From Octopus bimaculoides (Eukaryota): a stretch of DNA of 64,000 nt. Below the pieces are notes generated by a model. That model worked only from the letters and a program-made list of their open reading frames with translations. It did no database searches and had not been told where the DNA came from. The translations under genes were made by a program, and so were the position numbers. Numbering within the stretch: position 1 is the first letter of the stretch; each line of letters starts with the position of its first letter. Location: NCBI RefSeq assembly GCF_001194135.2, contig NC_068989.1, positions 81,912,049-81,976,048 on the forward strand, read 5' to 3'. Below, piece by piece: positions 6,136 through 56,712 of this stretch.

Positions 6136-7541
6136 TATAAAACTACTTTCCACAGTTAAGGGCAATGAAGTCTTTGGAGGATATATCTGATTTCTGTAGT
6201 AAAAGGTTTAACATTAATTTTGCTCACTACATTAATTACATTCTCATTCACTTAATTATTTTATAAATGGATTGACTGAGATAAGCAAATTTATGGCAGA
6301 AGCAAGTTTTGAACTGCTGACTCTGTTTTCAGAGGACCACAAGCATCATCTGAATCACAAATCTCCACATTTGCATGAATAGTAAACAAGGAGTGACTCA
6401 CACAAACGCAAAAATACACAATCTCATAATTTTTCTAGACATAATTACAAGAGAAAACAGACGTCATTGATGGATGTGGAGACAACAGTTGATAGTGAAG
6501 CAGATGAGCAGTAGATGAAGACAATGAAGGTGGAAATGATGATGATGATGCTCAAGGTGATGGTAGTGGTGGTGGTGGTGGTGGTGGTGATGATGATGAT
6601 GGTGATGATAATAGTGATGATGGTAAGTTTCTGACTTTGGTACAACGCCAGCAATTTCAAGTGGTTGGAGTTTGTTGATTAAACTCTATCACTTGACAGG
6701 TACCTTATTTTATTGACCCTAAAAAGATGAAAACAAACTTGACCATGGCAGGATTTGAACTCAGAATGTAAGTAGTCAGAACAAAATCCACAAGGTATTT
6801 TTTTTCCGACTCTCTAACTATTCTGCCAGCTTCAAGACAATGAATTACGATTGTGAAAGCAAGAAGACAAATTTTAGAAACAGAAGTTGTAAGAAAGCCA
6901 AAAAAAAATAGAAAAGGACAAAAAAAAAAAAAAAACCAGACAAAGATTATTATTATAATTATTATTATTATTATTATATTGCATTTTTTTTTTGGTTTGC
7001 TTTGTTGGCAGAAATGTTTCAGAAATATACAATATTTTCTTCCCATTCATGCTCTCCTGACAATCTCACAAACTCCCATTGACAGAGACCCATCTGTTTT
7101 TTTTTTCTTTTTGTTTTTCTTTTTAGTTCTATAAAAAGTCATCAGCCCCAAAATTGGTTTTATACATGCGTAGGTTTTTGGAGTTTTCTCGTGGAAGTGG
7201 GGGAGACATGGAAAGGGCTCTGAAATCTTTTTTTCAAAGGAACAAATATATATATACCTTTCTCAATTATTTTTAGGGCTATTAATGTATATATATGGGA
7301 ATGGGATGAATCAGTGCAGTATATACACTTTTGTAGGTATGTAAAATATGTGTGGATGCTCGTGTATGTATGTATATAATTATTTACTCATTTGAAGAGT
7401 AGAAATTTGTATTTTTAAATTAAAAAAGGGACAACTTGCCCATTAATAGTCATCAATGCACTCTGTATGCATATAAGGGTGGGTGGGGACAGAGTCTTCT
7501 GCTGGCTCATAAGGGTTCACTTTATAATTACAATGCCAGCC

Positions 7542-9619
7542 TTATTTCCTTAATGTTTGCTCAATGGTTGGTTGAGCAGGGAAAGACGAATCTGATGAAC
7601 CGGTCTGAAGACTGTAGGCCTGTAACCAGGCCAGTGGAGAATAGTCATGAACCTCTTTGATTTTAGGAGTGGGCTGAAATGCTTCTTTAAAAATAGTACG
7701 ACTGGGGTCATCCTTGCGCTGTAATAGCAATACCAGTGTGTTATAATGTTCACTACCCCCAACCGTGTGTCGTCGCTTGCCTCGTACTTTCCTCCTCGCT
7801 AAAGGGGGTGGGGAATTGGATCGAGGTTTCGCAGTTGTGTTCACTTTGGCCAGTACTGTAGACCGTGGTGTCCACAACTGTTGACCACTAGCGGAATCTC
7901 TAAAGTTCTTACGTGTATTTTCAGATCTGTAGCCACCATTGAAACAGTTATTTTTGTTACAAGATGACTTTAAGTTTTTTTTTGAATGGCAATCTTTTGG
8001 AGGTGAAGCACTTGCTGAAGGGGACAAAGAATATATTTTACCTAAATTAGAAAGTTTAGAGTCTATATACTCAGTACAGAGTCCACCACCATTGCTACGT
8101 CGTTGGACCAGTTCCGAAGATGATGCTAAATGACTTGCAGCTATTGGTGCAGCACCATGTGTTATTATTGCCCGCTCACCCAAAACATGTGCTGTCGGAC
8201 TGGAGTTACTGCGTGTGAAACGAGAAGCAATACCTATTTTTGTCTCTGGTTTCTGAGAACGATGTAAACTGGGATCACGGAAACTATCAAAAACATCTGT
8301 ATTCTTTTTTGCCTGTCTACTATACGCCAAACCAAGGTTCAACATACGTGTACTCTCGGCTTGGGCCAACTCAAGACTCTCACTGGTACAATCATAAACA
8401 TTGCTGTTGGAAGGGACAATTTCATTGTTTTTCACAGCTGAATATGGTGGCACACCTATGTTGGATGGAGGCCGTGGTCTGGAACTACCATTTAATTTAT
8501 ATTTAGGATTTAATAGGATCTGCAGTTTCTGATCAAACGTTGAGGTTAAGCTTGTTAATAGGTCAGAACCATCTTCAGAATCAGTTGAAGCCCAGGACAA
8601 ACGATTCTCTTTCTTATCATAAAAGTCTATCATAGAATCTAGAGAACCTCTCCGTAAGCTATTTCTCCGTGTAAGGCCCAAGTCAGAATCATTTTGTGGA
8701 CTTAGCTCTCTGTCTTGTGTCTTACGAGCAACCATTGACAATGGAGATGACCAAACTTGACCCGTGTCAATAATTGTCTCAAGAGAATTTGACCTCTTTG
8801 CATTATCAAATCCTGTATTGAGGTATGATGTTCGGTCAGAGATCTTGCTGTTTCCAACACTAACAAAATACTTTCCACCACTAACTGGTTCAATTGCTTT
8901 AGAAGTTGACCAGCTCTTGCCCTGTAATTGATAAGAGTCTAATGAATCATAAGGCTTGGCATATGCAGCAGAGTAAGGGTGGTTAGTAGAGTACCATATC
9001 TTTCTTGGATTTAATAATTCTTCAAGACTATGTTTATCTTCCAACTCCATCTCATGCTTAGTACGCAGATATTCCTGGTCAAATTTCTTTGACTCTTTTT
9101 CTCTCACTTCGCATTCTCTTTTATGTTGTTCCTGAACTTTCTTGAGAAATTCCTGTTTGCTCTGAAGATTTGATTCGAGGCTGTGGCTGAAAGTTTTCTG
9201 GAGACCATATGAGAATTCCAGCTCATCACTTTTCTCCAATAGGGATTCATCTGAGAACTGACGAGCAAGATGAGGGTTTGAAGACTTGGAGAACACTTCA
9301 GAATCAGTGTAATCATCGAAGCCTATAGACAAAGAAGACACAGATGCCTTATGTTCACTGGTGAGACGACTATTGTAAGAAATAGTGTCCAGTTGGCTTT
9401 GAGAACCATCAGACTGTAGTTCCATTGAGTTAGCCAGAGCTTTGTTAGAATGAAATTTAGCAATCTCTGCATCAATATTGCGTTCTTCATATTTGGGACC
9501 AGGCGGTGTTGAAGAATCTGCTTCATCAAGGCCTTTGGTTTTCTTGTTGTGATTCTTATTCTTGGCAGCAGCGATCATAGCAGCAACTATTTCCAACGGA
9601 TTTGTTTCTTCAGATTCAT
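7542..9619 (-). CDS. ARHGAP21: Terminal coding exon (2078 nt): long low-complexity C-terminal tail with KRRHTVGG and AWLQ..LQT motifs
   Basis: Acceptor tttcag|ATGAATCTG at 9619, phase 1 (G+AT = Asp); matches the 712-aa ORF 7542-9680; TAA at 7542-7544. Confidence 0.9.
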
Positions 9620-11876
9620 CTGAAATGGCAAAAAAATATTTTGTAAACATATAATAACAAACATAATTACATAGGCACAAGGTTATACATCCGAGGGGGG
9701 GGGGGGCTGCAATCGATTATATCTGCTGCAGGAAGTTGAAAGATAAAGAAAATGGTGTTACTTTGTCGTGTGATCCACAACTTAAAGGGAGATTACTTTA
9801 GGTTACTTGTTAGTTTATTTTTCAATTTCTAAAAACACTTAAGATGATGGCTCAAGATTTTTTACAATGAATTCTTTTGTACATACTTAGCATTGTAAAT
9901 TTATTTTTTCAGAATCCTTACTATTTTAATAATCAAACCATGTTTCATTTATGCCTTAGTAAATAATAATAAAAAACCAAGAAAAACAATCTAATTAAGA
10001 TAAGCTCGTAGCTCACAGTTTGGCAGTCGTGAGTTTTACAACGTAAAGAAACAAAAAACTAACCTAAAGTAATCACCCTTGAATTTGTAGATCACACACC
10101 AAAGTAGCACCAAGAAAATTTTGGCAGGATTCAAACCAAGAATGTAAGGGTATAATGTAATGCTCTACAAGTCAACAATTTACTGTTTCTGCAAGAAATA
10201 ATCTCCCCCCATCCTTTCTTCCACTTTAACAAAAACAACAATAATAATATAGGCAAAAGGCCTTAAATTTAGATGGGAATGAATAAGATTTTAAACAATC
10301 AACTCCAGTACTTTACTGATACTTAATTTTATCACTTTCAGAAGGATGGAAGGAAAAGTTAACTTTGACAGGATTTGAACTCAGAATCTAATAAGGAAGA
10401 AGTATAGCAGAGTGTTTTTCTGATACTCTAACAATTCTGCTAGCAATACTAATAAAAATCCTTTCCATTATAGGCACCAGGCCAGAAATTTTTTTTGGTG
10501 GTGGGGCTAGTTAATTACATCAACCCCAGTGCACAACTGGCACTTACTTCCACTTATTTCAATGACCCCAAAAAGATAAAGGGCAAAGTTGACCTCAGAG
10601 GAATTTGAACTCAGCTGCTAAGCATTTTGCCCAGCATGCTAACAATTCTGCCAGCTCACCATCTTCATATGTAATATTAGAATAACAAAGTGTGAGAAAG
10701 GGCAAGAATAATTGATTTCATTTGACCCTAAGACATAAGAGGTATTTATTGAATGAAGCCCCTTTCCTCCACCCAGAAGGAGTGTGTGGGTAAAAGGCAA
10801 AATTTGTTGAAACAAGGTTATTTTAAAAATAATTTAGTTTCATCTATTAATATTTAAATGTGAAATTATGAATGATAGGCGCAGGGGTGGCNNNNNNNNN
10901 NAACAAAGTGTGAGAAAGGGCAAGAATAATTGATTTCATTTGACCCTAAGACATAAGAGGTATTTATTGAATGAAGCCCCTTTCCTCCACCCAGAAGGAG
11001 TGTGTGGGTAAAAGGCAAAATTTGTTGAAACAAGGTTATTTTAAAAATAATTTAGTTTCATCTATTAATATTTAAATGTGAAATTATGAATGATAGGCGC
11101 AGGGGTGGCTGTGTGGTAAGTGGATTGCTTACCAACCACATGGTTCCGGGTTCATTCCCACTGTGTGGCACCTTGGGCAGGTGTCTTCTACTAGAGCCTC
11201 GGGCCGACCAAAGGCTTGTGAGTGGATATGGTAGACGGAAACTGAAGGAAGCCCGTTGTATATATGTATATATGTATATATATATGTATGTTTGTGTGTC
11301 TGTGTTTGTCCCCCCAGCATCGCTTGACAACCGATGCTGGTGTGTTTACGTCCCCGTAACTTAACAGTTCGGCAAAAGAGACCGAGAGAATAAGTACTAG
11401 GCTTCCAAAGAATAAGTCCTGGGGTCGATTTGCTCAACTAAAGGCGGTGCTCCAGCATGGCCACAGTCAAATGACTGAAACAAATAAAAGAGTAAAAGAG
11501 ATTATGTTAGATATGTGATGTATCAGTAAAATTGCTAATCTGCTGGTAATGAAAGAAAGCTGACTGAATATCCAGAAATAAAGGGTACCCAAATACTTGA
11601 CCAAACCTGTGAAAAGGGAAACCCCAAATAAGGGAAATGTCCATCGCTTGTGTATGTATGTGTTAGTACACCTATGTATGAGTGTGTGTGTGATCACTTA
11701 CCAAGATCATCATCAGGAGTGGATGCCGGTGCCATAGGACTGACCGTTCCTGTAGGAACCTCAGCAGCTCCATTCTCATCCACAGGAACATGATCATCAA
11801 CATCCCATGAACTGAAGAACCAATCAGGCTGAAAACATCAAATAAAAAAAAAAACTGTATATGTATGTATGTGCGC

Positions 11877-11949
<73 letters not shown>

Positions 11950-11956
11950 ATGATGA

Positions 11957-11992
<36 letters not shown>

Positions 11993-14980
11993 AGAATTCA
12001 CAAAAAAACAACAGACAAAGACAGGTGGTGTAGAAAACAAACAGATTTATTAGTATAACGCTCGGGAATTCAGAATAGTAAACAGTTCAAACAATAGACA
12101 TTTTGAGTTCGGGGTCTAAGAATGGAACAGCCAGGTTTGATGTTGGTAGAAGTTATTAAAGAATATATTACTTACATGAAGAATCACACTCTCAATAATC
12201 CGACATTGATGAGACATGTCAATGGCCATTGCTTGTACGTCTTCATCATGGCGGCGCACTAAAGTTGGACCAAGAACTATGGCCAGGTTTCGGGCACACA
12301 TCTGAAACAGGAATATATACTAGAGATGTATGAGCATATACACATACTTACAACACTTATAGTCACAGCACCAGGATAATGTCTATACTTACAGTCACAC
12401 TAATAGAACAATATAATTAGTTACACCAATACACAATGTCTATACTTAGTCATGCCAATAGACAAGGTCTATATGTACAGTCACACCAACAGGACAATGT
12501 CTATACTTAGAGTCACACCACTTGGAGGATGTCCTTACCTTGTTGATATGGCTGTGGTCAGCTATTTTGCGTAAATGATGCGCCAAATGACGAAATGTTT
12601 CAAAGTGGACATCTGGCAACTGATGAATAACCCTCTTCAATGTCAGCATCCTTTTCTGTGGATTTTCTATCTGGTTAGCATTGATGAAGCTCTGGTATAA
12701 CTCTGTAACAAATGATATAGTGGTATGCATAAGCTGCAGATAATGTAGTGACATACATTAAGATGGTGATGTAATAGAAGCGTACATGATGTACCCTGTG
12801 CTGTGTACAATGTAACTACAGTAGAATGTTATACTGTGAAGGGAAGGCACATGGCTTAGTGGTTAGGGTGTTCAGCTTACAATCACAAGGTTTATTTGAC
12901 ACGTGAGTAGAACTATGTCTGGAAACCTCGTGACATACTTAGATTGTTGAAAAAAAAAATCGATAATAGGGCCCTTCCAATGGATCCTTCTATCTACTAC
13001 ATATTACTAATGTTTTATTTAAAGAACCTAAGGGAAATAACCCATACCACCTACAGATTTTAGTGAAGCGATTAATTTTTGATTCTCATGATCAGCCGAC
13101 CTAATTCTGCATTTCACTACTCACAGTTTTGAACTGCTAAACATTATTATTGTACTTCCTTAATTTGAATCTTAAACATTAAAGACTTCATTCGTACATT
13201 TCTATACACACATACTTTTTTGAATGCTCATTACTCCGATAATTCTGCATTTTTACAGTTACACTTTTTCCATGACAGTAGATAATTTTTTTATTCCACA
13301 ACGTATTTGTAGTGGCTTTATGCAGGCATGGCATGGATTCGATCCTCAATTGCCCAATTTCACTCAACACTTCAACAGCGCTTTTCTCATGGTAAACAAT
13401 AGTTTTTCTGCAAATGACAACAGTTATATATTTCCCAGATGCCTTCACTAAGCAGAATAATGTCTTTGCCTCTCACCAATCTCCGCCAACCTCTCTCACC
13501 AACCTCTGACAATCTTTCTCGCTAACCTCCAAGTACCTCTCTCGCCAACCTCCTCCAGCTGACAGTTTTTGTACTTTTTTGTGACGGTTATAACAAAATT
13601 GCTTTCTTATATCACAGTAATAAGGCGTTTCAATAGAACATCTTTACCACCGGGAATTACTGGGTACACCAGCTAGTATATATATAGTCTAATCTAAAGA
13701 CTCTACAGTTTCCCAAATGTGCAACCAATTTCTAAGACTGCAGTACAAAATAAGGTGAACATAATCTACTGGATGTATGATATTAGACTAAAAGAACAAC
13801 TGGGTATAGGAGTTTGATTTGGTTTTTTTTCTCAAGGGAAGAAACTGTGTTGGTATGGGGTATGTGATGTATGAAAAGAGTAATAGTTCAATAAAGAAGA
13901 AGCAAGTGATTTCAGAAGAAGGAACCTACAGAAAACACATGCATATATAGCAATGCTTACTCACCATTGGTAACTAATGGTTCTGGAAGTTTCTGGAAGA
14001 AAGACTTTAACAAACTACTGATTACATTCACATCTTGCCATTTTTCATTTTCTTGGTTGATGTATTCTAGACCCTGTAGTGAAGAAGAGAGAACAAATAA
14101 CAGTGAGGTGAGGATTTATAGTGAACTTTTACAGAAGCAGACAGGCTCTGTTGGGTACAAGATGGCGTGTCAATAACATTTGCAAAATGAATAATGAATT
14201 CTGTTGTTAAGAAAGGGCCACAATGTTGGATTATAGTAGAAGGTTAAAAGAGGTAGATCAAACAAAAAGGACACAAAAATCTACAAAAACAATGATATAT
14301 CAACATGAACTCAGGTTATGGGGAGAAACCATCACCCAGGGTAATTTGCAGTACTCCCCACAAAACTCAACATGCCAAAGGTAATAATTATAATAATAAT
14401 AGTAATATTTTCCATTATAGGCACAAAGTGAAATTTTGGGGGTAGAGGGTAAGTCCATTACGTCAACTGGTACTTATTTTATCTGAAATGACGAAAGGCA
14501 AAGGTGACTTTGCAGGAATTTGAACTCATAATATAAGGCTGGAAGAAATGCCACAAAGCATTTTGTCAAGCATGCTAACAATTCTCAGAGCTCTCTGCCG
14601 TAATAAAGGATTTAAATTTCAGCACAAGGCCTGCAATTTGGGGGAAGGGGGGTTTTTAATTCAATTACAGCGACTGGTACTTATTTTTATTGACCCTGAA
14701 AGGGTGAAAGGCAAAGTTGACCTCAGAAGAATTTGAACTCAGAATGTAAAGACAGATGAAATGCCACTAAGCATTTTGTCCAGTATACTCTCTTTCTTGT
14801 TTTCAGTCATTTGACTGCGGCCATGCTGGAGCACCGCCTTTAGTCGAAGAAATTAACCCCAGGACTTATTCTTTGTAAGCCTAGTACTTATTCTATCGGT
14901 CTCTTTTGCCAAACCACTAAGTTACGGGGATGTAAACACACCAACATCAGTTGTCAAGCGATGTTGGGGGACAAACAAAG

Positions 14981-15036
<56 letters not shown>

Positions 15037-15485
15037 GACGGGCTTCTTTCAGGAAAGTCTTTCTAAATATCTCCAGAGGAGTATGAACCTACAATTTAGT
15101 GGGTTCACAATTTTTAACCCCTGTTTGGCATTAGAAAGGGCATCCAGCTGTAGAAACTTTGCCAGATCACACTGGAGCCTGGTGCAGCCTTCTGGCTTGC
15201 CAGTCCTCAGTTAAACCGTCCAACCCATGCCAGCATGGAAAGTGGATGTTAGACGACAACGATGTAGCCATTATGCAAGATAATGAGGGATCCTCTATGG
15301 AGTCACTTGAGCTGTTAGAAATAGCAGTCAGCTCTCCCACCATCCTACTCTACCATGTTAAATAAAGAGGCTACATTGAGCAATGTTGTTCCTTATATAT
15401 AACAGGATGGATGGTCATAATTAAAATCCCTTTCATCACAGGTCTCTAAAATCAGGGCTGATCTGGAATTATGTGACAACAATAA

Positions 15486-15531
<46 letters not shown>

Positions 15532-18500
15532 GTAAAAAGTACAAACCTTGTTGAATTCCTCTTGCATGTTAGAAATAACCAACTTGTTGCCAGGAATTCT
15601 GTAAACACCAATAACCTTCAGTCCTCGTGTTTCAACAATACTGGTGCAGAGATCAATAACGAAGGGGATAGACTAGAGGGGAGAGAAAGAGAGAAAAACG
15701 GGGTCAATATTGATGTAATAGAGGACAGCATAGAAAAGAGAGAAAACAAAAAAAGGATTTGGGGAAAGTAAAACTTTATAATTTGAACATTTCTTACCTC
15801 TATTTGGTAACATTTAATAATTTAACCCTTTAGCATTCAGAATAATTACTCAGTCAAATTATAATAGAATACTTTTTTTATTCATATTATTTTGAATTAA
15901 TTATGCATTATCTCATAGCTTTGAGATTTTGATGATGTGATTGTATTTTTTAGAATGATATTGTAGGCTAGATGTGAGAGGCTGGATCTAGCTGGTTGTT
16001 GTTGGCACTCCGTCACTTATGACACAGTGTGACAAAGCTGGCCCTTTAAATTACAGGCACAACAGAAACAGGAAGTAAGAGTGAGAGAAAGTTGCAGTGA
16101 AAGAGTACAGCAGGGTTCGCCACCATCCCCTGCCGGAGACTCATGGAGCATTTTTTAGGTGTTTTCGCTCAATAAACACTCACAACACCCGGTCTGGGAA
16201 TCGAAACCGCGATCTTATGACCGCGAGTCCGCTACCCTAACCACTGGGCCATTACGCCTCCACATCTAGCTGGTATAAACATAAAAAAGCTATAACATAT
16301 TGTCCAGATATGGCCAAGTTAAATGCTAAAAGGTTAAGTTAGAAACGTGATAGTAGTGGTAGTGGGGTGATGGTAGATGATAGAAGTGGCGATGGAGGTA
16401 GTGATTGTGGTGGTGATGATAACAATGGTGGCAGTGGTTGTGGGGATATATTATGAAGGTAATGTGATGTTAGTTTTGTGATGGTGGTCTTGTGATATGA
16501 TTAAAGAAAACATGACTAGAACTCTAAAAACAAGTATCTACTCACTTCCTTATAGGGAGAAGGGGTACACAGCTCAAGATGGACTCCAAAAGAACCAGTT
16601 GCTTCTTCAGGGGCCGGTGGTTGGTTATTTCCCTTGTTTTTAAAACGAATCTTTTCTTTCCAACTTTTTGTCTTTGTACCATCTTCTGGAAAATACAGCA
16701 TCGTGTAGACAGGGGAAACAAGAATTTATTGATAACATTAGCACATGCACAAACTATTTGTAGCTGTTCAATACAAGTATTGAATCTACTCCACAGCAAC
16801 AATAAATTGAACAACCAGATATCATATGGGGGAATGTCCCATAGTATTAGTCTCGAATTTTGGCACAAGATCAGCAACTTGGTGAGAGTGAGGGTAAGTT
16901 GAATACATTGACCACAGTGCTCAACTGGTACTTATTTTATCGACCTCAAAAGGACAAAAGGCGAAACTGACTTTGGTGGAATTTGAACTCAGAACATCAA
17001 GACAAACAAAAAGTCACTAAGCATTTTGCCTGGCACATTAATGATTCCACCAGCTCACCACCTTAATGTCCTGTAAGAGTGAAGACCTAGTTAGAAGAGA
17101 TTTCAAGTAAGATTTCAAATCATTCTAGAAATCTTAAAAGCCTGAAGGAAAACAAAGCTTTTAACCTTTTAACATTCAGATTATTCAATCAAATGAAATG
17201 CTTATTTATTCACATTGATTTGAATTAACCATGCATTATCTCATAGATTTTGATGAGATGATGTGATTGTATATATTTTTAGAATGACATTGTAAAATAG
17301 GTGAGAGAGGCTGGATCTGGTTGGTTTAAACAAAACTGGTAGAATACTTGAGCCAGATATGGCTGATTAAAATGTTAAAGGGTCAAAAGAGTAAACACCA
17401 TCTTTTACTACATTTGGTTTGATTCATTTTGTGTTTGACTGTTGGATACCAGGTTGGTTATGTTTATCAGTGAAGGACAGAACTGAACTAATTAACCTTT
17501 GTTTCATGGAGGATTCATTGTAAAGATAAAGATGTCCTTCAACTGTTGCTGATTGCAACTTATCTCAAATGTTGGTAAATAACAACAATTTAGTTATTGT
17601 TTACACTCAGACCAATCCTAATTTAACTGATCAATGATCAATGTGATTCCAATCATGCCCATCTCACCTATGACAACATTTTCTTTTAAAGTGGTGGGAT
17701 GTGGTGAGTTAAGGTAGATTTGGCTGCTATTTCTAACAGATTGAACTATCACTTAGATGTCCCTTCCTTGGTTTATCAAGTGTTTAATAATACATATATC
17801 CAACTAATTAAGGCAATTTATTTAATCTCTGGACTTGTGCACCCTCAATATTTTAAAAACAGCCCCAAATGCCTGTTTAGCATTCTGTAACTTAAATTAC
17901 AAATTAGGTAATTTTTTTTTTAATATTCTGGAAACTGAAGAATGCAGTAATGAAGAAGGTGATTTAAGATATTATATGGACCAACATGGAGAGACAAACA
18001 GTTACACACACATACTTATATACATTCAACATTTTATATATGTGTGTGTTTGTGTGTTACTATAGAATCTTTGCCAATAAAAACAGATTAAGTAAATTCC
18101 ATAACTCAAGTTACCGATCTTTTTTCTACTGAATTTATTAAGAAGTATGTCTAACTGTAATACACACGTTCTAAATGCCAGCAATACTAACATAAGTCTA
18201 TGTTAATATAAAGCGATAACAGTATACATGTAATTATTTACAATGTTACCCCTCACTGTGTCAACAGTTGTAGATAATCAAGGTTGCCTCAACCATTCAG
18301 CAGTACAGCAACTACCTTTGCACCCCCCCTTCCCCACCACCACCACAACAGCAACAATTGATGAAGGTCAAATTGTTCAGATTACCTTTTGTTTTGGGTT
18401 TGCTCTTTAATATAAACAAACTGTTGGGTGAAAGAAGCAAGGACAAGTGCAACATTCAAAAGAAGGTATTTCTTTTTGGATCAGAATATAGCCTGTATGT

Positions 18501-19654
18501 CAAACAGAAGCTACCTCCATGTTAAATAGTGTCCCTGTCCTTATGTCAACCACAAGGTGCCCCTGTATCAACCACAAAGTGCCTTCTGCCAAATATTGTG
18601 TTTTATGCCAACATAAAGATGTTCTAAATCAGTGGTTCTCAACCTGGGTCCATTGACCTGTGAGGGTCCACATAATGAAATAGTAAATTAGGGATTCAAA
18701 ATGATATTTTAAGGGCCCCTGAAAAAATATTTGCTTTAGATGTATGTATCGGTATGTATTGCAAGAAACAGTTAAGTTTTTCTTTTACTCTGACAGTTTA
18801 CATAATTCAATCTACACAAATTAATGTGTGAAAATCAAAATAGGAATTTTGAAAGTAGTTTCTATAAAACCCGTTTTTAAACATTGAATGGCAATGGGGG
18901 GCCCACCAGAATAAAATAATAGTCAAAGGGGTCCATAAATAAAAAATGGTTGAGAATCCCTGCCCTATCAACCCTATATGGACCATTAGGTGTACCTGTA
19001 TAAAACACAAAGTAACTACATATCAACCCGCCAAGGTACTCCTATATCAAAATCAAAGACCCCTGTATCAGTCACTATGTCAATTTCAAGCTGACTGTGT
19101 CAATACAAAAATGTTCTTATGTCAAAAACAAACTCACCCTCAAGGTTCACCTCCCACCTGTAGAAATTACTCGATACTTGAAAGGACTTACCATTAGTTT
19201 TTCGTCGGCGAGTACTTGGGGAATGTGTCATTTTATGTCGAAAAGACAGCACTTGCAATTTCTTTGAACTTTTCACTGGCATCTGTGGGGAGCTTTTTAT
19301 GTTAGGTATATGGGTGGGTGTTGTTTCCTGTCAAAAACAAAATATTCAATAATTAATTGCAGAAGATTGTTAAGTCATTATAAATTATTTTATATTGATT
19401 GAAGTTTCTGTATGAAGCAGACCAGTCTCCTTTAAGTTTGAGAATTTTTTATTCACTCTCGGAAGAATGCATTCATTATTTCAGCCTGACTGTGTTTGTA
19501 GACAGTTGAAAAGAATACTTTTAACAAAAAAAAACCCAAAATAAATGACAGCATTGTAGTTGCTCGTGGGCCCCTTTAGTTTCCTGGCAACCAATATTTT
19601 TAGACCCAGTCCGCCACTGCATATATGTATATATTATAGATATGTAAGTGTGTA

Positions 19655-19706
<52 letters not shown>

Positions 19707-22700
19707 TACATATAGGGACAAAGAGAGAGACGTTTAGTTATATATGATGTGTAACACAATGAAATCTGCGTATCCTTTGATACAAGGTAATGATTAACTT
19801 GAAAAGCTGTGTACTTACATAATCTATTTCACTATCACTAGAGGATCTGAGGGCCTGAATCCAGGACCACATTGTGTCATTGTCCTCAGCCTGAAAGAGA
19901 AACTCTGACGCATGATTGTTGGTGGTCAGACGAAATACATTCTTCTTCTTGGTGTAATCTGTGGCCACCTCCACTGAAGAAGACTTTATAGACACAGGCT
20001 GATCAAACTCAGAGATCTGCAGAAAAATAAAAAAGACACAGGATGATCAATATTTGAAAGCTTCAGCTGAAAATTAAATAGAAAATCACTTAATATTTAA
20101 AGAAATATTTTGATTGTCTTTGGGAGATTGAGTTCTAGAAAAATTTCATTGTTTCAAAGGATTACCAATAGATTAGCACATATAAAAGTTATTTACAGTC
20201 CTCAAGAGAATTATCTTCAATTGTTATCTCATATAATCTGTGACTATGGACTGGTCCCTTACTGTGAGTGAACATGATTCGGAAACAACCATGCAAAATT
20301 ACATAAACAACATTGCATTTTCAAAGAGACAATATTTCTATGAATTAATGGCTAAAATTTGTTGTTCAGCAATGTTAGCTGGGCTGCCCTCTTATGTAAG
20401 TTGTAAATAAACTTTGAAATTTCGTTGATGTCATAAGAATTTCTATAAACTCCAAGAGAATATGAAATGATTCACTTTTGGAATGTTAGATCTTGAAGCA
20501 GTTAAGCTATAAATAATAGCATATAAGTGATGGGTTAAAAATCCCTATACATGCTATAATTTATAGCTTATTTCTTTCAAAATCCAACATTTCAAAAAAG
20601 AACCTTTGAAACATAAAATAACACACTCTGCTTTGAGATGTGTGGGGCAGTTTTTGATTTGCAGACACCTTAGCTGTAAGACAAGGAATACCTGTATGTA
20701 TGCATGTACATACATATCTACATATGTATGTGTGTATGTGTGTGTGCGTGTGTGTGTGTGTCTGTGTGTGTATATAATATGTGTAGTCTCATAAGTTAAC
20801 CGATTGGTTCTCTTCTCTATTTGAAGTTGATATTTGTAATATTAGTAATGATGGTTTTAATTTAAATTATAAGTTTAATTATGCTTTAACCATAAATATT
20901 AGGATACAATGAAAAGTTAGTTGATGTTTTACATAATGTCTACTTTGAATAATCTCTCTATTTTCTAATAAACAAAAATATTACACCCAAACTTATCTCT
21001 CGCTACATAGGGTGGGAGACTCTAGAAAGCTACCAGGTTTTCTTTACACCATACACCAAACAGAAACCAAGATGTAAAAGTCAATCGAAAGAGAATTATT
21101 CTTAGTCAAATACTTATTCTTTTGAATAAGAAACCATTATCTTTGATATGTAAGGAAAAAGCTTTAGCTTTAGAGACCAAACAGCTTAATGGCCTGGTGT
21201 GTCACAAATATTGTATTATAGAAATGAAGGACTTTGGTGGTGTTCTGTGAAATTAGTGATATGAGAGGTCAGAGATGAAAGAAAAACTCACAACTGAATT
21301 ATTGTCCTTGCGTTTGTCAGTGAGATAGAGTTCTTGGCCTTTCAGCAGCACCAAACATGGTTTCCAGGAGCGATCACTAGACCTCTGTAGAGAGACAGAG
21401 AGAGATAAGTAGGTAGAGATAGATGTAGCTAGATAGAGAAGCAGATATAGATAGATAGATAGATAGATAGATGGATAGATAGATAGATGGATAGATAGAT
21501 AGATAGAAACATATAGATAGATAAATAGTCAGACAGACAAATAAATAGATAGATATACATAGATACATATACATAAAAAGAGATAAATAGACACAGATAA
21601 ACAAAGAGACAGAGATAGAAAGATAACATCCAGTACTATTGTTTTCTTAGTTATATATCATTATCGCACATGCACATGTAAATATAAACACACATAGACC
21701 CATATGTTGATTTAGAGGTAAAGATACACATATCCACACACACACAGTCTCCTCCACAAATATAAACACACATGTAACTAATCCTTTTTAACAGTTGGGT
21801 GCACACCCACATACATAAATACAAATAATAACACAAATATATGTGCACACGCAGCTAAGATAATAGCTTTATTTAGCAAGAAAGAAGACAGACAGCTACT
21901 GCCATCTGGGAAATACTCATTCTTGATATGCATAAAAAGAATAAGTAGGAACTCTACACTGTGTTCTCAGTGTGGGCAGAAAAGCTATAGGAGGGTCATG
22001 GGCAGACTGACAGAGAAGAGGGACTTTGTATGTAGCAGATACTGCATAGGAGTAATTAACAGTTAAAATAACATGGAATAAATTACTTTAACGACCCTGG
22101 GAGTCTAAATAGAAGATAATTTTTTTTACTTTGATGACTATCAACAATGAAAGTGAGCATTCCAAAATCATTGTGAGAACATCCTCATCATTATTATCAT
22201 CATATAATTGTTTAACATTGGTTTTCCATGCTGGTATGGGTTGGATGACTTGACAGGAGTTGGCCAGCTGAGGAGCTGTCCAGACTCCAGTTGTCTGTTT
22301 TGGCATAGTTTCTACAGCTGGATGCCCTTCCTAACACCAACCACTTTGCAGAGAGTGCTGGGTGATTTTTTATGTGCCACTGGCATGGGTGCAATGACAC
22401 AGCACCGGCATGAATGCATAAACATGTGGCACTGGCACAAGTGCATTTTATGTGTGGAAAAATTTCATGCAGCTGCTAACAAAAGGGATTCTTTGTATAA
22501 TCGAAGAAAACTTTGGTTGTGGTGGATATGCAAAGGCTGACATGCTTTACTAAATATATTATGTTAATGTGCATGAATGGAAAAGGGCAGGTAATCTAAA
22601 AACACTTGCAACAATTATGTGCAGGTAAAGATGACTGACCCTGAACCTTTTGTATAAATTTGTCTGCTTTTTAGGATTACCTGACCCATGTTTGACTGCC

Positions 22701-25700
22701 ATTTGTATGGAATCCTGCTCCCTTTTGTATTTGTGTGTTTTGTCCAGATCTACTCAATCAGAACTGAATAGGATATACACAACAATAAATCAACACCAGT
22801 TAAGTCAATATTTCTTGACTTGTTCAATGCAATAGCCAAATACCCTTCAACACATCCCATTATAGCCAGAAATACTGATCAATATTTCACTGGCACCACT
22901 GAATCAGTTGAGTTGATCCAAAAGTGTTTTAGCAAGATATGCAGATAAGAAAAGAGTTTATGCTTAGAATTCTTTAACACCACTCTCATTATGGTTGATG
23001 TTGGTTGGGATGTCTATAAATGTCTGGTTAATGTTACATTTGTTGTGTTTCAGTCCTGTACGTCCCTATCAGACAGTCATGACCTGCCTTCCAACATTTC
23101 ATGCAACTACTCTCCAATGTTGACCGACTGCTAATAACTTCACAAGCTCAGGGCACCAACTTATAATACTTCAACAGCCACTCACATAACATGATCACAC
23201 AGTCACATCACATGACAACATGTCACTACATCACATGACCACACAACACCAATCATCTCTCTTGTATTAAAAAAAAAAGTGACAGAGTCTCAACTGACCT
23301 TTCCATCAATGATGGCATTCTTGCAGGATAAACATCCTTCTTTCTTTGCTTCTTTCGGTGGACTAGATGATTGCGGTGGGGTGAAGTCACTTCTGCTTGG
23401 TTCTTCTGCTATTGAGGAATTAGTCTAAGAAAAAAAGGGAAAAAAAACCCCGTTCAGATTACTTTTAATTCAGCCACAGAATACAGTTTTAATGATATCA
23501 CATTAACTCCTCTTTTAATGAGGGTTAAAAGGAAAAGTGAAGGAGACAGATGCAAGGATAGAGATGAAGGAGAGAACCAAAACAATTGCTGCAGTTATAT
23601 CTTTGCTGAGCAGTGTTTAAATGAAGGGTACTCAGTAAAAACAAAACCTGAGAATGGCTTAAAAGTCACCAGTATATCTTGTTAATAGACAATCACACTG
23701 AATGTTCACTAGTCATCAGTTACTAAGAGCATGACTTTAGAAAATAGAGCATGAATAAAGGAAGTTTTCTAACAAATAGATAGATGAGTGAAGCCTGAGT
23801 GAAGGCTATCTCTTAAGAAGGCAGATTATTAGAGACTTAGTGTAGTCTGACAATAGTTTGAATGAAGTTTGCTTTTTGAGTGCAGGCACGATTATGTGAC
23901 TATGGTTTTGGGCCTGATTGTGTAGCCTCACATAAACCAAGGTCTAGTGAGTGAAATTTGTGAGGCAAAAACTGTGTAGAAGCCTATCATAAGGGCCATT
24001 CCCACTTGGGGGTCTTAAATTTAATCCCTTGCTTAGTTTAATACCACTACACTGGCTCCTGATTGCCTTCAGTGGAGTCCAGTCTATTGCAAACACTTGG
24101 GTCAGCCTGAGGGTAATGCCCTTTCTTCCCTTACTCCTACCAGTCATGGAAGCACAGAAAAGGGTCGTGGGTGCACTCCTTCCTCCTCTGATTAAACCAC
24201 AAAAATGATTTCAATCCTGGATAGCAATTCACATTTCTCTCTATTTTAGATAGGAGTGGGGGAAAACAGATATTTCTGCTTTAATTACTTCACCTAAAAT
24301 TAATGAGTAATTAATTAGTATGATCACATCGTTGTTTACAATGAAGATGGCACAAACAACACTTACTTTTTCCTCAATTAGAATGGAAGACTTTAATTTC
24401 TTGGACTGAACTGTTTGTGAGGAACTGTCATAAATAGGTAAGGATCTGCAAAAGACAAAAGTAAAAACTTTAAACAAGGAATATAGTAACTTTCATGATA
24501 AATATTAACATGATTGAGGCATAGGTCTGTGATTAAGAAATTCATTTTGTAACCATGTGGCTCTGGGGTTCATTTAATTCTGTGGTACCTGAGGTGCCTT
24601 CTATCATGGCCTTCAGGAAAATCTAAAAACTGGAAATCTGTTTTTATATATATATCTATAAATTTAGTAAATGGAGTAAAACGCATATGTTAACTGAATA
24701 CTTTTATTACCAACATATGTTTCGAAGATTACAAATTATACCTTCCATAGGAATAGGTGATGTTGATAAGAATGTAATCTTCTCTTCAGGAAAATGCATG
24801 GGAACCAGCTTAAACGTAAGACATTTTAACCGAATATAAGAACTGTATTTGGAGAAGGTTGTTACGTAATTTATTTGAAAATTATATATATATATATATA
24901 TACTAGCAGAAATACCCGGCTTTGCCCGGGTTAAAGAGAATAATGAAATCTAAAAACGCCGTCTAGACTACGCAACCCTCAACTGTTAGTAGCTACGATA
25001 CCATATTTCTACANNNNNNNNNNNNNNNNNNNNNNNNNNNNNNNNNNNNNNNNNNNNNNNNNNNNNNNNNNNNNNNNNNNNNNNNNNNNNNNNNNNNNNN
25101 NNNNNNNNNNNNNNNNNNNNNNNNNNNNNNNNNNNNNNNNNNNNNNNNNNNNNNNNNNNNNNNNNNNNNNNNNNNNNNNNNNNNNNNNNNNNNNNNNNNN
25201 NNNNNNNNNNNNNNNNNNNNNNNNNNNNNNNNNNNNNNNNNNNNNNNNNNNNNNNNNNNNNNNNNNNNNNNNNNNNNNNNNNNNNNNNNNNNNNNNNNNN
25301 NNNNNNNNNNNNNNNNNNNNNNNNNNNNNNNNNNNNNNNNNNNNNNNNNNNNNNNNNNNNNNNNNNNNNNNNNNNNNNNNNNNNNNNNNNNNNNNNNNNN
25401 NNNNNNNNNNNNNNNNNNNNNNNNNNNNNNNNNNNNNNNNNNNNNNNNNNNNNNNNNNNNNNNNNNNNNNNNNNNNNNNNNNNNNNNNNNNNNNNNNNNN
25501 NNNNNNNNNNNNNNNNNNNNNNNNNNNNNNNNNNNNNNNNNNNNNNNNNNNNNNNNNNNNNNNNNNNNNNNNNNNNNNNNNNNNNNNNNNNNNNNNNNNN
25601 NNNNNNNNNNNNNNNNNNNNNNNNNNNNNNNNNNNNNNNNNNNNNNNNNNNNNNNNNNNNNNNNNNNNNNNNNNNNNNNNNNNNNNNNNNNNNNNNNNNN

Positions 25701-26324
25701 NNNNNNNNNNACATATACATCTCTCTCTCTCACTCTTTCTCTCTTTCTCTCTCTCTCTGAAAGTATCTGTCATTACAGTATCGAAATGTGATTGTTTCAG
25801 TTAGTAGAATAGTTTCATTTTTAAAGTGAAAGTATTTGACATGAGTGTTTTTGTTTCACTTTTGACACGTAATACTTAAATAGTGGAGGAGATATTATGT
25901 TGCTGTGGGCATCTGTAAAATTTGAATGAAATTGGTTGCGTAGTTCTCAAGTTTTAGGGATTCACACAGACAGACAGACAGACAGACACACATTCTCATT
26001 TTTATATATATAGATATATATATATATATGAGAAGTAAATGGATGTAATAACAAAGGGAAACTTGTGGTTTTCACTGGTATGCCTTTAATTTAATTAGAT
26101 AATTGTTATCTAATTAAATTAAAGGCATATCAGTGAAAACCATAAGTTTCCCATTGTTATTACATCCATTTTCTTCTCCTACATAACCTAAACTAGGGTC
26201 TACCAACCAAACCACCTGCTACCGTACAACTTTACAAAAGACTGTACCTACCCAGGTAATAACCAGGAGTGACTTTGGATTTAATTATCCCTTAGAGGTA
26301 TTAAACCCCTCTAACTGATACCTA

Positions 26325-26360
<36 letters not shown>

Positions 26361-26637
26361 GCCACTATCCTCTATGGAACAAATTTAATTTGTGTCCGTG
26401 GGAAGAGCTATTTTAACAATGCGTCCTGTCCTAACTCTTCAAAACGCCAGTGTTATAATGGTGACAGCTGATGAAGAATATGTTCTCTATGTGGCCTGTG
26501 TGTTTTTTGTATCTTGTTTATCATTTTGTCCATGTTTTTTTTGCAACGTCATGTACCCAGATATGCATCTATATATACATGTAGATGAAGGTATGTACAT
26601 ACATGTACATATATATGCATATACTCATATATCATTT

Positions 26638-26706
<69 letters not shown>

Positions 26707-27157
26707 AAGAGTTTTACTGAGTCATATCCTTTTATATCAAACATATTTTCTACAATAAATGCCAGACTGAAAAATGCAATTAAAGAATACACACATAAGG
26801 CTATCTAGATAAGATATATGGAGGTATATCAGTGTATAAATGTGTAGTAAGGTGCTGCACTATTGTGCAGTACAGTGTGCCATAGTATATATATATATAG
26901 TGTTAATGTGCCATTGTATATATAGTGTGCCAGAGTATGTATGATGTGTCAATGTGACATAAGGCACACTGCTGTGTAATGAAGGGCATCACTGACATGA
27001 TATTGGGTAGCAGATACTTACAGTTTATCTGGAGTGATGGAATTGAATTTGTTGATGGACTGCAACGGTGTGTTGAGATCTGAACGTTCTTTAGCGGTGG
27101 CCATAAGATAGGAGGTACGTCTCTGTAACTTGACAGCATCTTGTTCCGGGGACAAAT
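7542..27157 (-). CDS. ARHGAP21: Multi-exon gene (13 exons reconstructed) for a PH + RhoGAP protein of the ARHGAP21/ARHGAP23 (RhoGAP19D) family; 5' part not resolved
   Basis: Exons 27022-27157, 24367-24445, 23299-23424, 21292-21384, 19819-20016, 19192-19327, 16546-16685, 15547-15672, 13965-14073, 12539-12702, 12176-12301, 11702-11828 and 7542-9619 all have GT-AG ends, join in compatible phase and give one open frame. Motifs RRTSYL, PH (RSWK...KNVFRL...FQAED), GAP ([32 protein letters not shown]) and C-terminal RRHTVGG match ARHGAP21/23 as I recall them. The symbol denotes the 21/23 co-ortholog. Confidence 0.93.
10250..10660 (-). mobile_element. Two tandem copies of a second SINE family (head GGCGGCGAGCTGGCAGAATCGTTAG, core TTCTGAGTTCAAATT, tail (ATT)n)
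   Basis: atttgaactcag at about 10375 and 10605, separated by an AAT tract; a further copy lies at about 6640-6835. Confidence 0.75.
11097..11500 (+). mobile_element. Full-length, well-preserved tRNA-derived SINE
   Basis: ggcgcaggggtggctgtgtggtaag...ggttccgggttcattccc...tgactgaaacaaataaaagag. Confidence 0.88.
11702..11828 (-). CDS. ARHGAP21: Exon [42 protein letters not shown] (end of GAP domain, DWFF)
   Basis: ttttcag|CCTGAT ... CTTG|gtaagt; 127 nt, phase 0 to 1. Confidence 0.92.
12176..12301 (-). CDS. ARHGAP21: GAP exon [42 protein letters not shown]
   Basis: tttcag|ATG ... CAT|gtaagt; 126 nt; classic RhoGAP M..NLAIVFGPTL box. Confidence 0.96.
12340..12520. repeat. Degenerate ~30-bp minisatellite filling the 237-nt GAP intron
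   Basis: Recurring agtcacaccaa-nn-gacaatgtctatactt units. Confidence 0.8.
12539..12702 (-). CDS. ARHGAP21: GAP exon (E)[54 protein letters not shown]
   Basis: gttacag|AG ... AAG|gtaagg; 164 nt, phase 1 to 0. Confidence 0.96.
13000..13678 (-). mobile_element. Helitron/Helentron-like non-autonomous element
   Basis: Minus-strand 5' end TACTAGCTGGTGTACCCAGTAATTCCCGG resembles 24901-24930; lies next to (TA)n; left boundary approximate. Confidence 0.45.
13965..14073 (-). CDS. ARHGAP21: GAP exon [36 protein letters not shown]
   Basis: ctacag|GGT ... AATG|gtgagt; 109 nt; [17 protein letters not shown] is diagnostic of ARHGAP21/23. Not in the ORF track. Confidence 0.96.
14405..14785 (-). mobile_element. 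Two tandem (ATT)n-tailed SINE copies
   Basis: atttgaactca at about 14519 and 14731. Confidence 0.75.
14790..15052 (-). mobile_element. 3' part of tRNA-derived SINE, inverted relative to 11097-11500
   Basis: Reverse complement of about 11250-11500; followed by an RTE tail at about 15125-15265 (+). Confidence 0.85.
15547..15672 (-). CDS. ARHGAP21: GAP exon [42 protein letters not shown] with intact arginine finger (YRIPG)
   Basis: cccctctag|TCT ... AAG|gtttgt; 126 nt, phase 0 to 0. Confidence 0.95.
15822..16337. mobile_element. piggyBac-like MITE (TTAA-CCCTTTAGCATT...AATGCTAAAAGG-TTAA) interrupted by a SINE
   Basis: 15/16-bp terminal inverted repeats starting with TTAA; uninterrupted copies at 17161-17386, 29447-29650 (opposite orientation) and 40967-41195. 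The superfamily is inferred from TTAA+CCC ends only. Confidence 0.7.
15997..16263 (-). mobile_element. Young tRNA-derived SINE with (AAC)n tail and perfect 11-bp target-site duplication
   Basis: TSD ATCTAGCTGGT at 15986-15996 and 16264-16274; head GTGGAGGCGTAATGGCCCAGTGGTTAGGG (A box) and GGTTTCGATTCC (B box). Confidence 0.9.
16546..16685 (-). CDS. ARHGAP21: Exon (E)[46 protein letters not shown] (FGV.LE entry into GAP)
   Basis: ttccag|AAG ... GAA|gtgagt; 140 nt, phase 1 to 0. Confidence 0.93.
16850..17065 (-). mobile_element. (ATT)n-family SINE copy
   Basis: atttgaactcagaac at about 16981 with flanking family sequence. Confidence 0.75.
18630..18962. mobile_element. hAT (Charlie/MER5-like) MITE inserted in a degenerate minisatellite
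   Basis: TIRs CAGTGGTTCTCAACC and GGTTGAGAATCCCTG (13/15); TSD decayed (TTCTAAAT vs CCCTATCA); ccctgtatcaacc-like units on both sides (about 18495-18625 and 18963-19140). Confidence 0.75.
19192..19327 (-). CDS. ARHGAP21: Linker exon [45 protein letters not shown]
   Basis: tttgacag|GAA ... AATG|gtaagt; 136 nt, phase 0 to 1, fits both neighbours. Confidence 0.88.
19819..20016 (-). CDS. ARHGAP21: PH-domain C-terminal exon [66 protein letters not shown]
   Basis: ttctgcag|ATC ... TAT|gtaagt; 198 nt; KNVFRL and FQAED..M..WI PH signatures. Confidence 0.96.
21292..21384 (-). CDS. ARHGAP21: PH-domain exon [31 protein letters not shown]
   Basis: ctctacag|AGG ... GTT|gtgagt; 93 nt. Confidence 0.93.
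21400..21625. repeat. (GATA)n/(GA)n compound microsatellite immediately upstream of the acceptor of PH exon 21292-21384
   Basis: Direct reading. Confidence 0.95.
22210..22390 (-). mobile_element. RTE-type 3' tail repeat (diverged)
   Basis: tttccatgctggtatgggttgg...gtttctacagctggatgcccttcctaacaccaaccac; similar relics at about 58050-58130 and 58735-58910. Confidence 0.7.
23299..23424 (-). CDS. ARHGAP21: Exon [42 protein letters not shown] (start of PH, KEG.L)
   Basis: tttcttag|ACT ... AAG|gtcagt; 126 nt. Confidence 0.92.
24367..24445 (-). CDS. ARHGAP21: Exon (L)[26 protein letters not shown]
   Basis: ttttgcag|A ... AAA|gtaagt; 79 nt, phase 2 to 0, exactly the phase needed between 27022 and 23424. 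Confidence 0.82.
24901..26015 (+). mobile_element. Helentron/DINE-1-like (HINE) element spanning the N gap 25014-25710
   Basis: 5' TACTAGCAGAAATACCCGGCTTTGCCCGGG after (TA)n; 11-bp subterminal inverted repeat ACTACGCAACC (24967-24977) / GGTTGCGTAGT (25934-25944); (CAGA)n near the 3' end; ends TTTTATATATATAGAT. Confidence 0.6.
26030..26178. repeat. Near-perfect inverted repeat: 73-bp arms, 3-nt loop, 4 mismatches
   Basis: Arms 26030-26102 and 26106-26178, aligned base by base. Confidence 0.95.
27022..27157 (-). CDS. ARHGAP21: Exon (D)[44 protein letters not shown]
   Basis: attctgcag|AT ... CT|gtaagt; 136 nt, phase 1 to 2; the RRTSYLMAT motif resembles the pre-PH R..SYL.AT motif of this family. 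The ORF track shows this region in another frame. Confidence 0.87.
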
Positions 27158-28179
27158 CTGCAGAATCATAAAACAGTTTATTGACTTTTTTGGAGGGGTA
27201 AAAGTTAATGATTGATTGCTAGGGGTAAAGATTGAGCAAGTGATTAGTTAATGATTAATGATTAGTGGAACAAAGGTTATTAATTTCTAGAATCTTCTAG
27301 TTAAATAGCATAAGTAATTATCTGATACTTGTGTCCAAAACAGACATTAGTTAGGAGGGGACAGTGCCCTTTGCCTCCGCTGGCTGGTGAGACTAATGTC
27401 AGGTGACATTTACCACGAAAGGCATCGAGTAAATTTTGGACATACAGGAACTAAGGTTTTGGCTCTGAATTCTACATTTATGTTGAGAAACATGTCATCA
27501 TTGAACTCCTAGCGATGTACCATGTTATAGGTGTTAAACTCCTGGTCAAGTGCTATATTATTAGCAGTGAAGTATGGATTAAGAACAATGCTACCAGGTC
27601 AGAGTACTAGGTTAGAGATGGTGAGTATTAGGTATGAACACCACAACTTCTACTTCTCAAAGTCAATGGATACTTCCAATTATAGTATGAAATATGATAC
27701 TTTTATAAATTAGAAAGCATTTAGCAGATCAATATTAATGTAGAGCATTGTTTAGTCACAAGATATCTCTAATAACAGAGGCCTATGATCGTGCCATATG
27801 AGGATGAAAGGTAAAGTTGGCCTCAGCATAATTTGAACCAGGGACGTGCCATCTAGGTGGGTAAGATAGGCAGTGCTTACCTTGGATAAAATAGATTGAT
27901 AGCAACATTTTCCTTTCATGGCAAAATATGCACCTAATTCAATAAAGTTATGAAGGTTACTCTGATTACTATGCATAATTCACCCCAGCTTTTCAATCTC
28001 AGTATTTAAGCCACGCATAGTAATTATGTAGTACACAAGCTGTGTAAACTCCTCCAACACAGTTTTCTTTATATGCTATAAAAGCAAAAGTAAATCTGCC
28101 TTCAACTCAGTCACATGCCTGTGTTTTGCTTATTTATTTTTGTGTTTTACTCACCAACTTCCTACCCTGAGTAATCACT

Positions 28180-28299
28180 GATGGCACGCGCCTGATTTGA
28201 ACTCAGAATTTAAATACCGAAACAGCCACTTTCTTCAGCAGAGTTCTTCTGACTCTGCCAATCGACCACCATTGCAACAACAACAACAACAACAACAAC

Positions 28300-28335
<36 letters not shown>

Positions 28336-28699
28336 CCTTACTTGCTTTAAGCTTGAAATTATGTGGGTGGGAGTTAGTTGATTACATTGACCCTAATGCT
28401 TAAGGAGAGAGAGAGAAAGAGAGAGGGGGGGAAAGAGAGATAAAGAGGATTCTAACCTTCAGTCTTCTTACGTAGAGTGACTTGGTCTGACTCAAAGGTG
28501 CTATGTGAGAAGAAACTCTCTTTGTTTTCTGCACAACTGGACATGTTGAGCAAAGTGCTGTCAGCTGCAATATAAATAACATTAATGATGATAACAATAG
28601 TAACAATGACAGTAATGGTGAAATTTACTTAGCAATTCAATGGTTATTAACATAAGTTGTATATAAAAATTCCAGTACTACAACAGTAGTAGTAGCAGT

Positions 28700-43329: not shown

Positions 43330-43912
43330 TCCAGAGATGTGTGTTACCTTCTACAGGTATGTGTGTGTGTGCATGTGTTACCCTTCAACAAATGTGCAAA
43401 TTTACCAATCTACAGATGTGTGTGATATTCTACAGACGTGTGTGATACCATTCTACAGATACGTGTGTTACCATCCTACAGACATGTTACCATTCTACAG
43501 GCATGTGTGATACCATTCTACGGACGGGTGCATTACCATTCTACAGACGTGTGTTACCATTCAACAAACGTGTGTTACCATTCAACAGACGTGTGTGTTA
43601 CCATCCTACAGATGTGTGTGTTACCATTCTACAGATGTGTGTGTTACCATTCTACAGATGTGTGTGTTACCATTCTACAGATGTGTGTGTTACCATTCTA
43701 CAGATGTGTGTGTTACCATTCTACAGACGTGCGTGATACCACCCTACAGATGTGTTACCATTCTACAGATGTGTCATTCTACAGACGTGTGTTATCATTC
43801 TACAGACGTGTTATCATTCTACAGACGTGTGTGATACCATCCTACAGATGTGTGTGATACCATCCTACAGATGTGTTACCATTCTACAGTGTGTGTGTGA
43901 TACCATTCCAAA
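43330..43912. repeat. 23-bp minisatellite, consensus TTACCATTCTACAGATGTGTGTG, with a homogeneous core and degenerate edges
   Basis: Exact units at 43621-43712; variant units differ mainly in GT number. Confidence 0.95.

Positions 43913-56626: not shown

Positions 56627-56712
<86 letters not shown>

Follow-up and report, generated by a model that had tools for sequence, protein, structure and literature searches.

Among described proteins, those closest to the gene studied here are ARHGAP21 and ARHGAP23 (PAC-1 in C. elegans and RhoGAP19D in Drosophila), in which a PDZ, a PH and a RhoGAP domain are combined. The gene itself lies on the minus strand of a 64,000-nucleotide stretch of Octopus bimaculoides DNA (NCBI RefSeq assembly GCF_001194135.2, contig NC_068989.1, positions 81,912,049 to 81,976,048 of the forward strand; the whole stretch is called the window below and is numbered from its first letter). 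It is the ARHGAP21 orthologue of this coleoid cephalopod, already annotated and otherwise ordinary. In its GTPase-activating protein (GAP) domain, however, Gln is found where nearly all relatives have Arg, four residues after a conserved Lys (the Lys+4 position). We consider this Gln to be probably a hard-wired and tolerated substitution that does not call for RNA editing.

The Lys/Arg pair forms a K-x-x-x-R motif, which the preliminary description of this locus had cited and which is borne out by the DLC1 motif LKQYFRDLPEPL seen in PDB 3KUQ and by a review in which Lys319 and Arg323 of p50RhoGAP are listed as critical binding determinants, as is an Asn (PMC8305018). The p85 protein, which is without an equivalent of Arg323, has undetectable GAP activity (PMC8305018), and the DLC1 R718A variant, changed at the equivalent position, behaves and serves as a 'GAP-dead' control (PMC4259810). 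The change from Arg to Gln in octopus thus replaces a substrate-binding determinant and not a catalytic residue.

The p190A and p190B proteins (ARHGAP35 and ARHGAP5) are likewise without the Lys+4 Arg, and both are highly active, efficient RhoA GAPs. A precedent of another kind is the Q/R site of GluA2 (GRIA2), where CAG is converted into CIG by adenosine-to-inosine (A-to-I) editing; editing there requires a complementary sequence in an intron. Restorative editing, which brings back an ancestral residue, is a recognised class and is enriched among coleoid edits (PMC6881472, PMC8382921). On such grounds the preliminary description had proposed that the genome encodes a weakened GAP, and that editing restores the Arg as a regulated switch.

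The octopus RhoGAP domain carries Gln at the Lys+4 position

The CAG codon can be read back directly from the minus strand of the window in a correctly spliced exon (the plus strand reads CTG), and its A falls at position 13994, exactly as the preliminary description had placed it. The GAP domain is spliced from four exons, labelled A to D here (Table 1), and the codon is found in exon B, which starts with GGT CTA after the ag acceptor and reads TTC TTC CAG AAA CTT CCA GAA CCA TTA GTT ACC AAT G before the gtgagt donor. The spliced domain (175 residues) shows 100% identity to residues 1141-1315 of the 2049-residue protein XP_014782142.1 ('rho GTPase-activating protein 21 isoform X2 [Octopus bimaculoides]' in RefSeq), and our exon model agrees with RefSeq. 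This record also confirms the coleoid origin of the DNA, which had been assumed beforehand.

In XP_014782142.1, Pfam places a PDZ domain at 136-221, a PH domain at 937-1042 and the RhoGAP domain at 1143-1291, the last (PF00620) with a score of 155.8 bits against a cut-off of 24.5 (E = 9e-46). The domain also matches 45 RhoGAP chains of the PDB at E ⩽ 0.001, chimaerin being the top match (3e-32). With PDZ, PH and RhoGAP domains in one protein and with top matches that are named ARHGAP21/23 orthologues, the gene belongs to the ARHGAP21/23 (PAC-1) subfamily. A divergent paralogue is ruled out by the same architecture and by close named relatives that are all annotated as ARHGAP21/23, and a pseudogene by exons that are open throughout, a ratio of non-synonymous to synonymous divergence (dN/dS) of ~0.07 and the RefSeq model.

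When the spliced GAP domain served as query in a word-indexed protein search, the matches were all distant and the cephalopod orthologues were missed, so an exhaustive HMMER search was used and the best 150 representatives of its 50%-identity clusters were compared. Of these, 146 have Arg at the Lys+4 position, three (the octopus gene included) have Gln and one has His; the 23 homologues that an initial search had returned all have Arg as well. Three other functional residues are preserved in octopus. Its arginine finger is intact (AGA in GVYRIPGN), as had been claimed before, and it has kept both the binding-determinant Lys (K65, p50RhoGAP Lys319) and the Asn (N138, p50RhoGAP Asn391), which are present in 147 and 148 of the 150 relatives, respectively. 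Hence octopus shares its domain organization and the conserved finger Arg, Lys and Asn with ARHGAP21/23, and its GAP domain is 50-65% identical to those of the orthologues in bivalves, a brachiopod, a nemertean and insects. It is unlike them in the Gln at Lys+4, in a Cys for Glu/Asp near the Asn and in a Leu for Phe in the IVFGP motif.

The Lys+4 Arg expected of a catalytically competent RhoGAP is therefore Gln in octopus, although this expectation is not absolute, given the Ser of p190A and the Ala of p190B. For the same reason, the description of this Arg as near-invariant holds within the ARHGAP21/23 family, but not for RhoGAPs generally.

Gln is fixed in Octopus and derived from Arg

The same Gln is present in all 15 listed members of the 90%-identity cluster, which are isoforms from O. 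bimaculoides, O. sinensis and O. vulgaris and all read FFQKLP. The O. bimaculoides protein is 97% identical along its length to those of O. sinensis and O. vulgaris; for the latter two species the evidence is at the protein level, from genomes that were assembled separately. Since three Octopus genomes agree, the Gln predates the split of these species and is neither an assembly error nor a private polymorphism. Given the draft quality of the window sequence, with its gaps of N, one might have put the A at 13994 down to faulty sequencing or assembly, or to a polymorphism confined to the animal that was sequenced, one of the ways in which the preliminary description might have failed; with Gln encoded in every listed isoform of the three species, the probability of such an origin is negligible.

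Outside Octopus, a more distant cephalopod (Logan transcript contigs L002/L003; at the amino-acid level its GAP domain is 74% and its tail 51% identical to octopus) has Arg, encoded by AGG, in LLKGFFRKLPDPL (FFRKLPDPL). Arg is also found in the bivalve orthologues of Mytilus, Argopecten, Mya and Pinctada, in those of the gastropods Candidula and Batillaria, and in named orthologues from a brachiopod, a nemertean and insects, while the relative L001 encodes it with CGG. This agrees with the Arg predicted earlier for bivalves and gastropods, and the non-editing molluscs, in which a shared Gln had been named as fatal to the editing proposal, carry Arg in every non-cephalopod sampled. Judged from this distribution, the Gln is derived from Arg, and recoding of CAG to Arg would restore the ancestral amino acid.

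Another octopod is represented by genomic contigs (L004/L005, Logan SRR11869390/94) that are 92% identical in DNA to window positions 7462-9945, covering the terminal exon and the adjacent intron. Its amino-acid identity is ~95%, and it is about equally far from O. bimaculoides and from O. sinensis/vulgaris. A query of this assembly with concatenated open reading frames (ORFs) from around exon B, an antisense ORF among them, gave no match to exon B, and this species contributes the terminal exon only.

The Arg has been lost repeatedly, each time with a Lys in the finger loop

The two other representatives with Gln are both malacostracan crustaceans, namely Penaeus vannamei ARHGAP21 (XP_069992698.1, MLKQFFQKLPDPLF) and Hyalella azteca 'pac-1' (XP_047738021.1, LLKQFFQRLPEPLV). 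The Penaeus protein (P0093) is the closest relative of the Hyalella one (P0171), and among named proteins both stand closest to insect orthologues, which all have Arg; therefore Gln was fixed independently in malacostracans. These proteins belong to the same family as the octopus one, have Gln for Arg at the same position and carry the same Lys at the fifth residue after the arginine finger (finger+5), but have a separate origin. Malacostracans are not known for mRNA recoding on the scale of cephalopods.

The replacement is also seen in another RhoGAP subfamily. The Lys+4 residue is Ser in p190A (MKSFFSELPDPL; PDB 3FK2, 5IRC) and Ala in p190B (LKAFFADLPDPL; PDB 2EE4). Like octopus, both proteins lack this Arg and have kept the finger Arg, the conserved Lys and the Lys of the GNK motif, whereas their domain architecture is different and the replacing residue is not Gln. 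With Gln in crustaceans and Ser or Ala in active p190 proteins, the octopus Gln is not necessarily detrimental, and probably no repair is needed. The premise that the genome encodes a weakened GAP is weakened by these cases, as well as by the strong constraint on the domain described below.

The finger+5 Lys (YRIPGNK in octopus) links these cases. It is present in all three Gln-bearing representatives and in only nine of 143 Arg-bearing ones, where Asn, Thr or Ser is usual; the nominal Fisher p of 0.0004 comes from ~three independent events, with 175 columns tested. The same Lys is found in p190A (YRVSGNKSEME) and p190B (YRVSGNKTDQD), so that every RhoGAP examined here that is without the Lys+4 Arg carries it. 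The nine Arg-bearing representatives with this Lys include the more distant cephalopod, which has Lys together with Arg; therefore in cephalopods the Lys preceded the Gln. The pattern is no more than suggestive of a nearby basic residue that is permissive or compensating for loss of the Arg. It is even conceivable that the finger+5 Lys has repeatedly taken over the structural role of the Lys+4 Arg, giving an alternative substrate-binding configuration in p190A/B, Octopus and malacostracan ARHGAP21.

On at least three occasions (Octopus, malacostracans and the p190 lineage), nature has thus exchanged the very Arg whose mutation is recommended in reviews as a way to abolish RhoGAP activity, and on every occasion the finger+5 Lys was present in the background. 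This bears on the design of 'GAP-dead' mutants and on the calling of RhoGAP pseudo-enzymes from sequence.

The GAP domain is constrained

Compared with the more distant cephalopod, the octopus GAP domain has a dN of 0.18 with synonymous sites saturated, and the resulting dN/dS of ~0.07 indicates that it is under purifying selection. An audit of the 55 columns with a conservation of ⩾85% showed that octopus departs from the family at five of them. Two of these departures are conservative (Val to Ile), Leu143 and Ala159 are common to the more distant cephalopod, and only Gln69, the Lys+4 residue, is both radical and Octopus-specific.

Two further positions near the conserved Asn deserve mention. 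A Cys (TGT, 12298-12296, minus strand) stands at position 135 in KMCARN, three residues before the Asn, where 137 of 149 relatives (92%) have Glu or Asp and the more distant cephalopod has Gly; this cephalopod loss of the acidic residue in KM[E/D]ARN is not reversible by A-to-I editing. At position 143 (IVLGP, region of 12272-12274, minus strand), Leu replaces the Phe of IVFGP, which is kept in 142 of 149 relatives; being shared with the more distant cephalopod, this Leu looks cephalopod-wide.

RNA structure around the codon

We have also checked whether exon B could lie in a double-stranded RNA of the kind on which ADAR acts. A pre-mRNA segment of 300 nucleotides centred on exon B folds no better than its shuffles (z = +0.65), and neither does a spliced mRNA segment of 301 nucleotides (z = +0.78). 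Inverted repeats were sought in 12800-15500, and none of them overlaps exon B. In the predicted folds, A13994 stands at the end of a 4-base-pair hairpin or is otherwise paired only locally. A double-stranded substrate around the site is therefore not predicted, long-range pairing being beyond the reach of such prediction.

When exon B is compared with that of the more distant cephalopod, 18 of 26 synonymous codons are identical, versus 47 of 97 in the other GAP exons; the difference is not significant (p = 0.08), and synonymous conservation was rejected as a sign of RNA structure. Splicing enhancers in a short exon could also be reflected in such conservation.

A tolerated substitution, a dead GAP or an edited site

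Taken together, the findings are best explained by a hard-wired, lineage-specific and tolerated Arg-to-Gln substitution in the Octopus ARHGAP21 RhoGAP domain, for whose function no RNA editing is required, and we regard this explanation as likely. The Gln was fixed before the O. bimaculoides and O. vulgaris/sinensis lineages split, most likely through a single G-to-A transition of the CpG type that changed CGG into CAG, with the codon used by L001 as the putative intermediate. The protein would have stayed a working PDZ-PH-RhoGAP enzyme in which, we infer, GAP activity is retained, though its affinity for Cdc42 or RhoA, or its preference between such substrates, may have shifted somewhat. Because the finger+5 Lys was already present in the finger loop, where it may have played a permissive role, loss of the Arg was probably tolerated; crustacean ARHGAP21 and p190A/B show the same configuration. 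Several points weigh against this explanation. Arg323 counts as a critical binding determinant (PMC8305018), so its loss can be severe in some contexts, as the GAP-dead behaviour of DLC1 R718A illustrates (PMC4259810), and the covariation with Lys goes back to the few events mentioned above. In addition, the host is a coleoid with hyper-editing, restorative sites in coleoids exceed other sites in both the frequency and the strength of editing (PMC6881472, PMC8382921), and the synonymous conservation of exon B is weakly raised.

The DLC1 variant leads to one alternative, namely that Gln cripples substrate binding as R718A does and that octopus ARHGAP21, unedited, serves chiefly as a PDZ/PH scaffold and does little as a GAP. 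R718A occupies the same structural position as the octopus Gln and shows that GAP activity can disappear when this Arg is lost; p85 and the critical standing of Arg323 point the same way, and so do the unusual Cys135 and Leu143. However, R718A is an engineered Ala in another subfamily, whereas the octopus Gln is naturally fixed under strong purifying selection, and the p190 proteins are efficient without the Arg. A dead domain would also be expected to drift at the finger Arg, Lys and Asn, as p85 does (PMC8305018), but all three are kept in octopus. We regard such a scaffold as unlikely.

The other alternative is that ADAR deaminates A13994 and that CAG is then read as CGG (Arg), so that the ancestral determinant is restored in some tissues or conditions; the site would then belong to the restorative or harm-permitting Q/R class, and might act as a regulated switch. 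The chemistry is that of GluA2 and of the restorative coleoid sites, since CAG to CIG would give Arg exactly, and the derivation of Gln from Arg fits as well. On its 3′ side the A has a G, which ADAR mildly prefers, and on its 5′ side a C, to which the enzyme is indifferent. Unlike at the GluA2 Q/R site, prediction yields neither an editing-complementary sequence nor a stable duplex here: the z-scores are positive, no inverted repeat was found at the exon and the hairpin is only 4 base pairs long. Moreover, a Gln that is fixed in crustacean orthologues, and a Ser or Ala in p190A/B, indicate that repair is unneeded, and the median level of restorative editing is below 2.5% (PMC6881472). The names ARHGAP21, ARHGAP23 and RHG21 are absent from the supplementary text of PMC8382921, PMC9068888 and PMC9989829, as contained in partial files without the full octopus site lists. 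Transcript contigs were found solely for the more distant cephalopod, whose codon is AGG. A restorative site of this kind is quite unlikely, and detectable editing of any sort at 13994 is unlikely. The central proposal of a weakened GAP with editing that restores Arg as a regulated switch finds no support beyond the prior expectation, and it is highly improbable that octopus neurons convert a weakened ARHGAP21 into its ancestral Arg form for a tissue- or temperature-tunable inactivation of Cdc42/Rho. Were the site edited after all, it would be an invertebrate parallel to the GluA2 Q/R site within the substrate-binding surface of an enzyme, and a concrete test case in the debate on harm-permitting versus adaptive recoding in cephalopods.

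Layout of the gene and other features of the window

The window carries the exons for residues ~803-2049, while neither the PDZ exon nor the long exon for residues 1-802 is included in it. The upstream exons are found at approximately 28565-28446, 27158-27021, 24444-24364, 23424-23287, 21387-21286, 20016-19810, 19327-19190 and 16683-16546; the remaining coordinates are collected in Table 1.

Table 1. Positions of the ARHGAP21 coding features in the window
Feature	Position	Strand	Remarks
CAG codon	13993..13995	-	Gln1209 of XP_014782142.1; RhoGAP Lys+4 position, equivalent to p50RhoGAP Arg323 and DLC1 Arg718
GAP-domain exon B, 109 nucleotides	13965..14073	-	ag acceptor, gtgagt donor; 36 residues and the first base of the next codon
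Conserved Lys codon AAG	14005..14007	-	p50RhoGAP Lys319 equivalent; kept, K in 147/150 relatives
GAP-domain exon A, 42 residues	15547..15672	-	carries the arginine finger; upstream of exon B
Arginine finger codon AGA	15598..15600	-	p50RhoGAP Arg282 equivalent; intact, GVYRIPGN
Finger+5 Lys codon AAG ('GNK')	15583..15585	-	rare in the ARHGAP21/23 family
GAP-domain exon C	12539..12702	-	ends HSHINK; spliced GAP-domain model
GAP-domain exon D	12176..12301	-	ends ESVILH; conserved Asn AAC at 12289-12287
Coding exon after the GAP domain	11703..11834	-	approximate boundaries (tblastn)
Terminal coding exon	7542..9620	-	~692 codons and stop at 7544-7542; 5′ boundary approximate
Upstream coding exons	16546..28565	-	residues ~803-1140, including the PH domain; approximate positions

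Runs of N at 25014-25710 (697), 46961-47671 (711), 10892-10901 (10) and 56935-56944 (10) are assembly gaps, located inside introns of the gene and in the DNA that precedes it. Microsatellites of the (CA)n/(TG)n and (TA)n types are plentiful in the introns (for example at 14982-15035, 15487-15528, 11880-11989 and 56630-56707); some of them, ~1 kb upstream of exon B, form trivial inverted repeats, and the exon itself is free of them. On the plus strand, an ORF at 43438-43857 consists of repeated CYHSTDVC / ILQMCVLPFYRCV units and looks like an intronic tandem repeat. A second plus-strand ORF, of 149 amino acids (45098-45547, ending in RPDIVVVDKMMKETKMIDIAIPRDVRVDDKELAKTEKYKLLKNEIA), is probably a fragment of a transposable element within an intron; it resembles the C-terminal portion of retrotransposon ORFs that are widespread among invertebrates.

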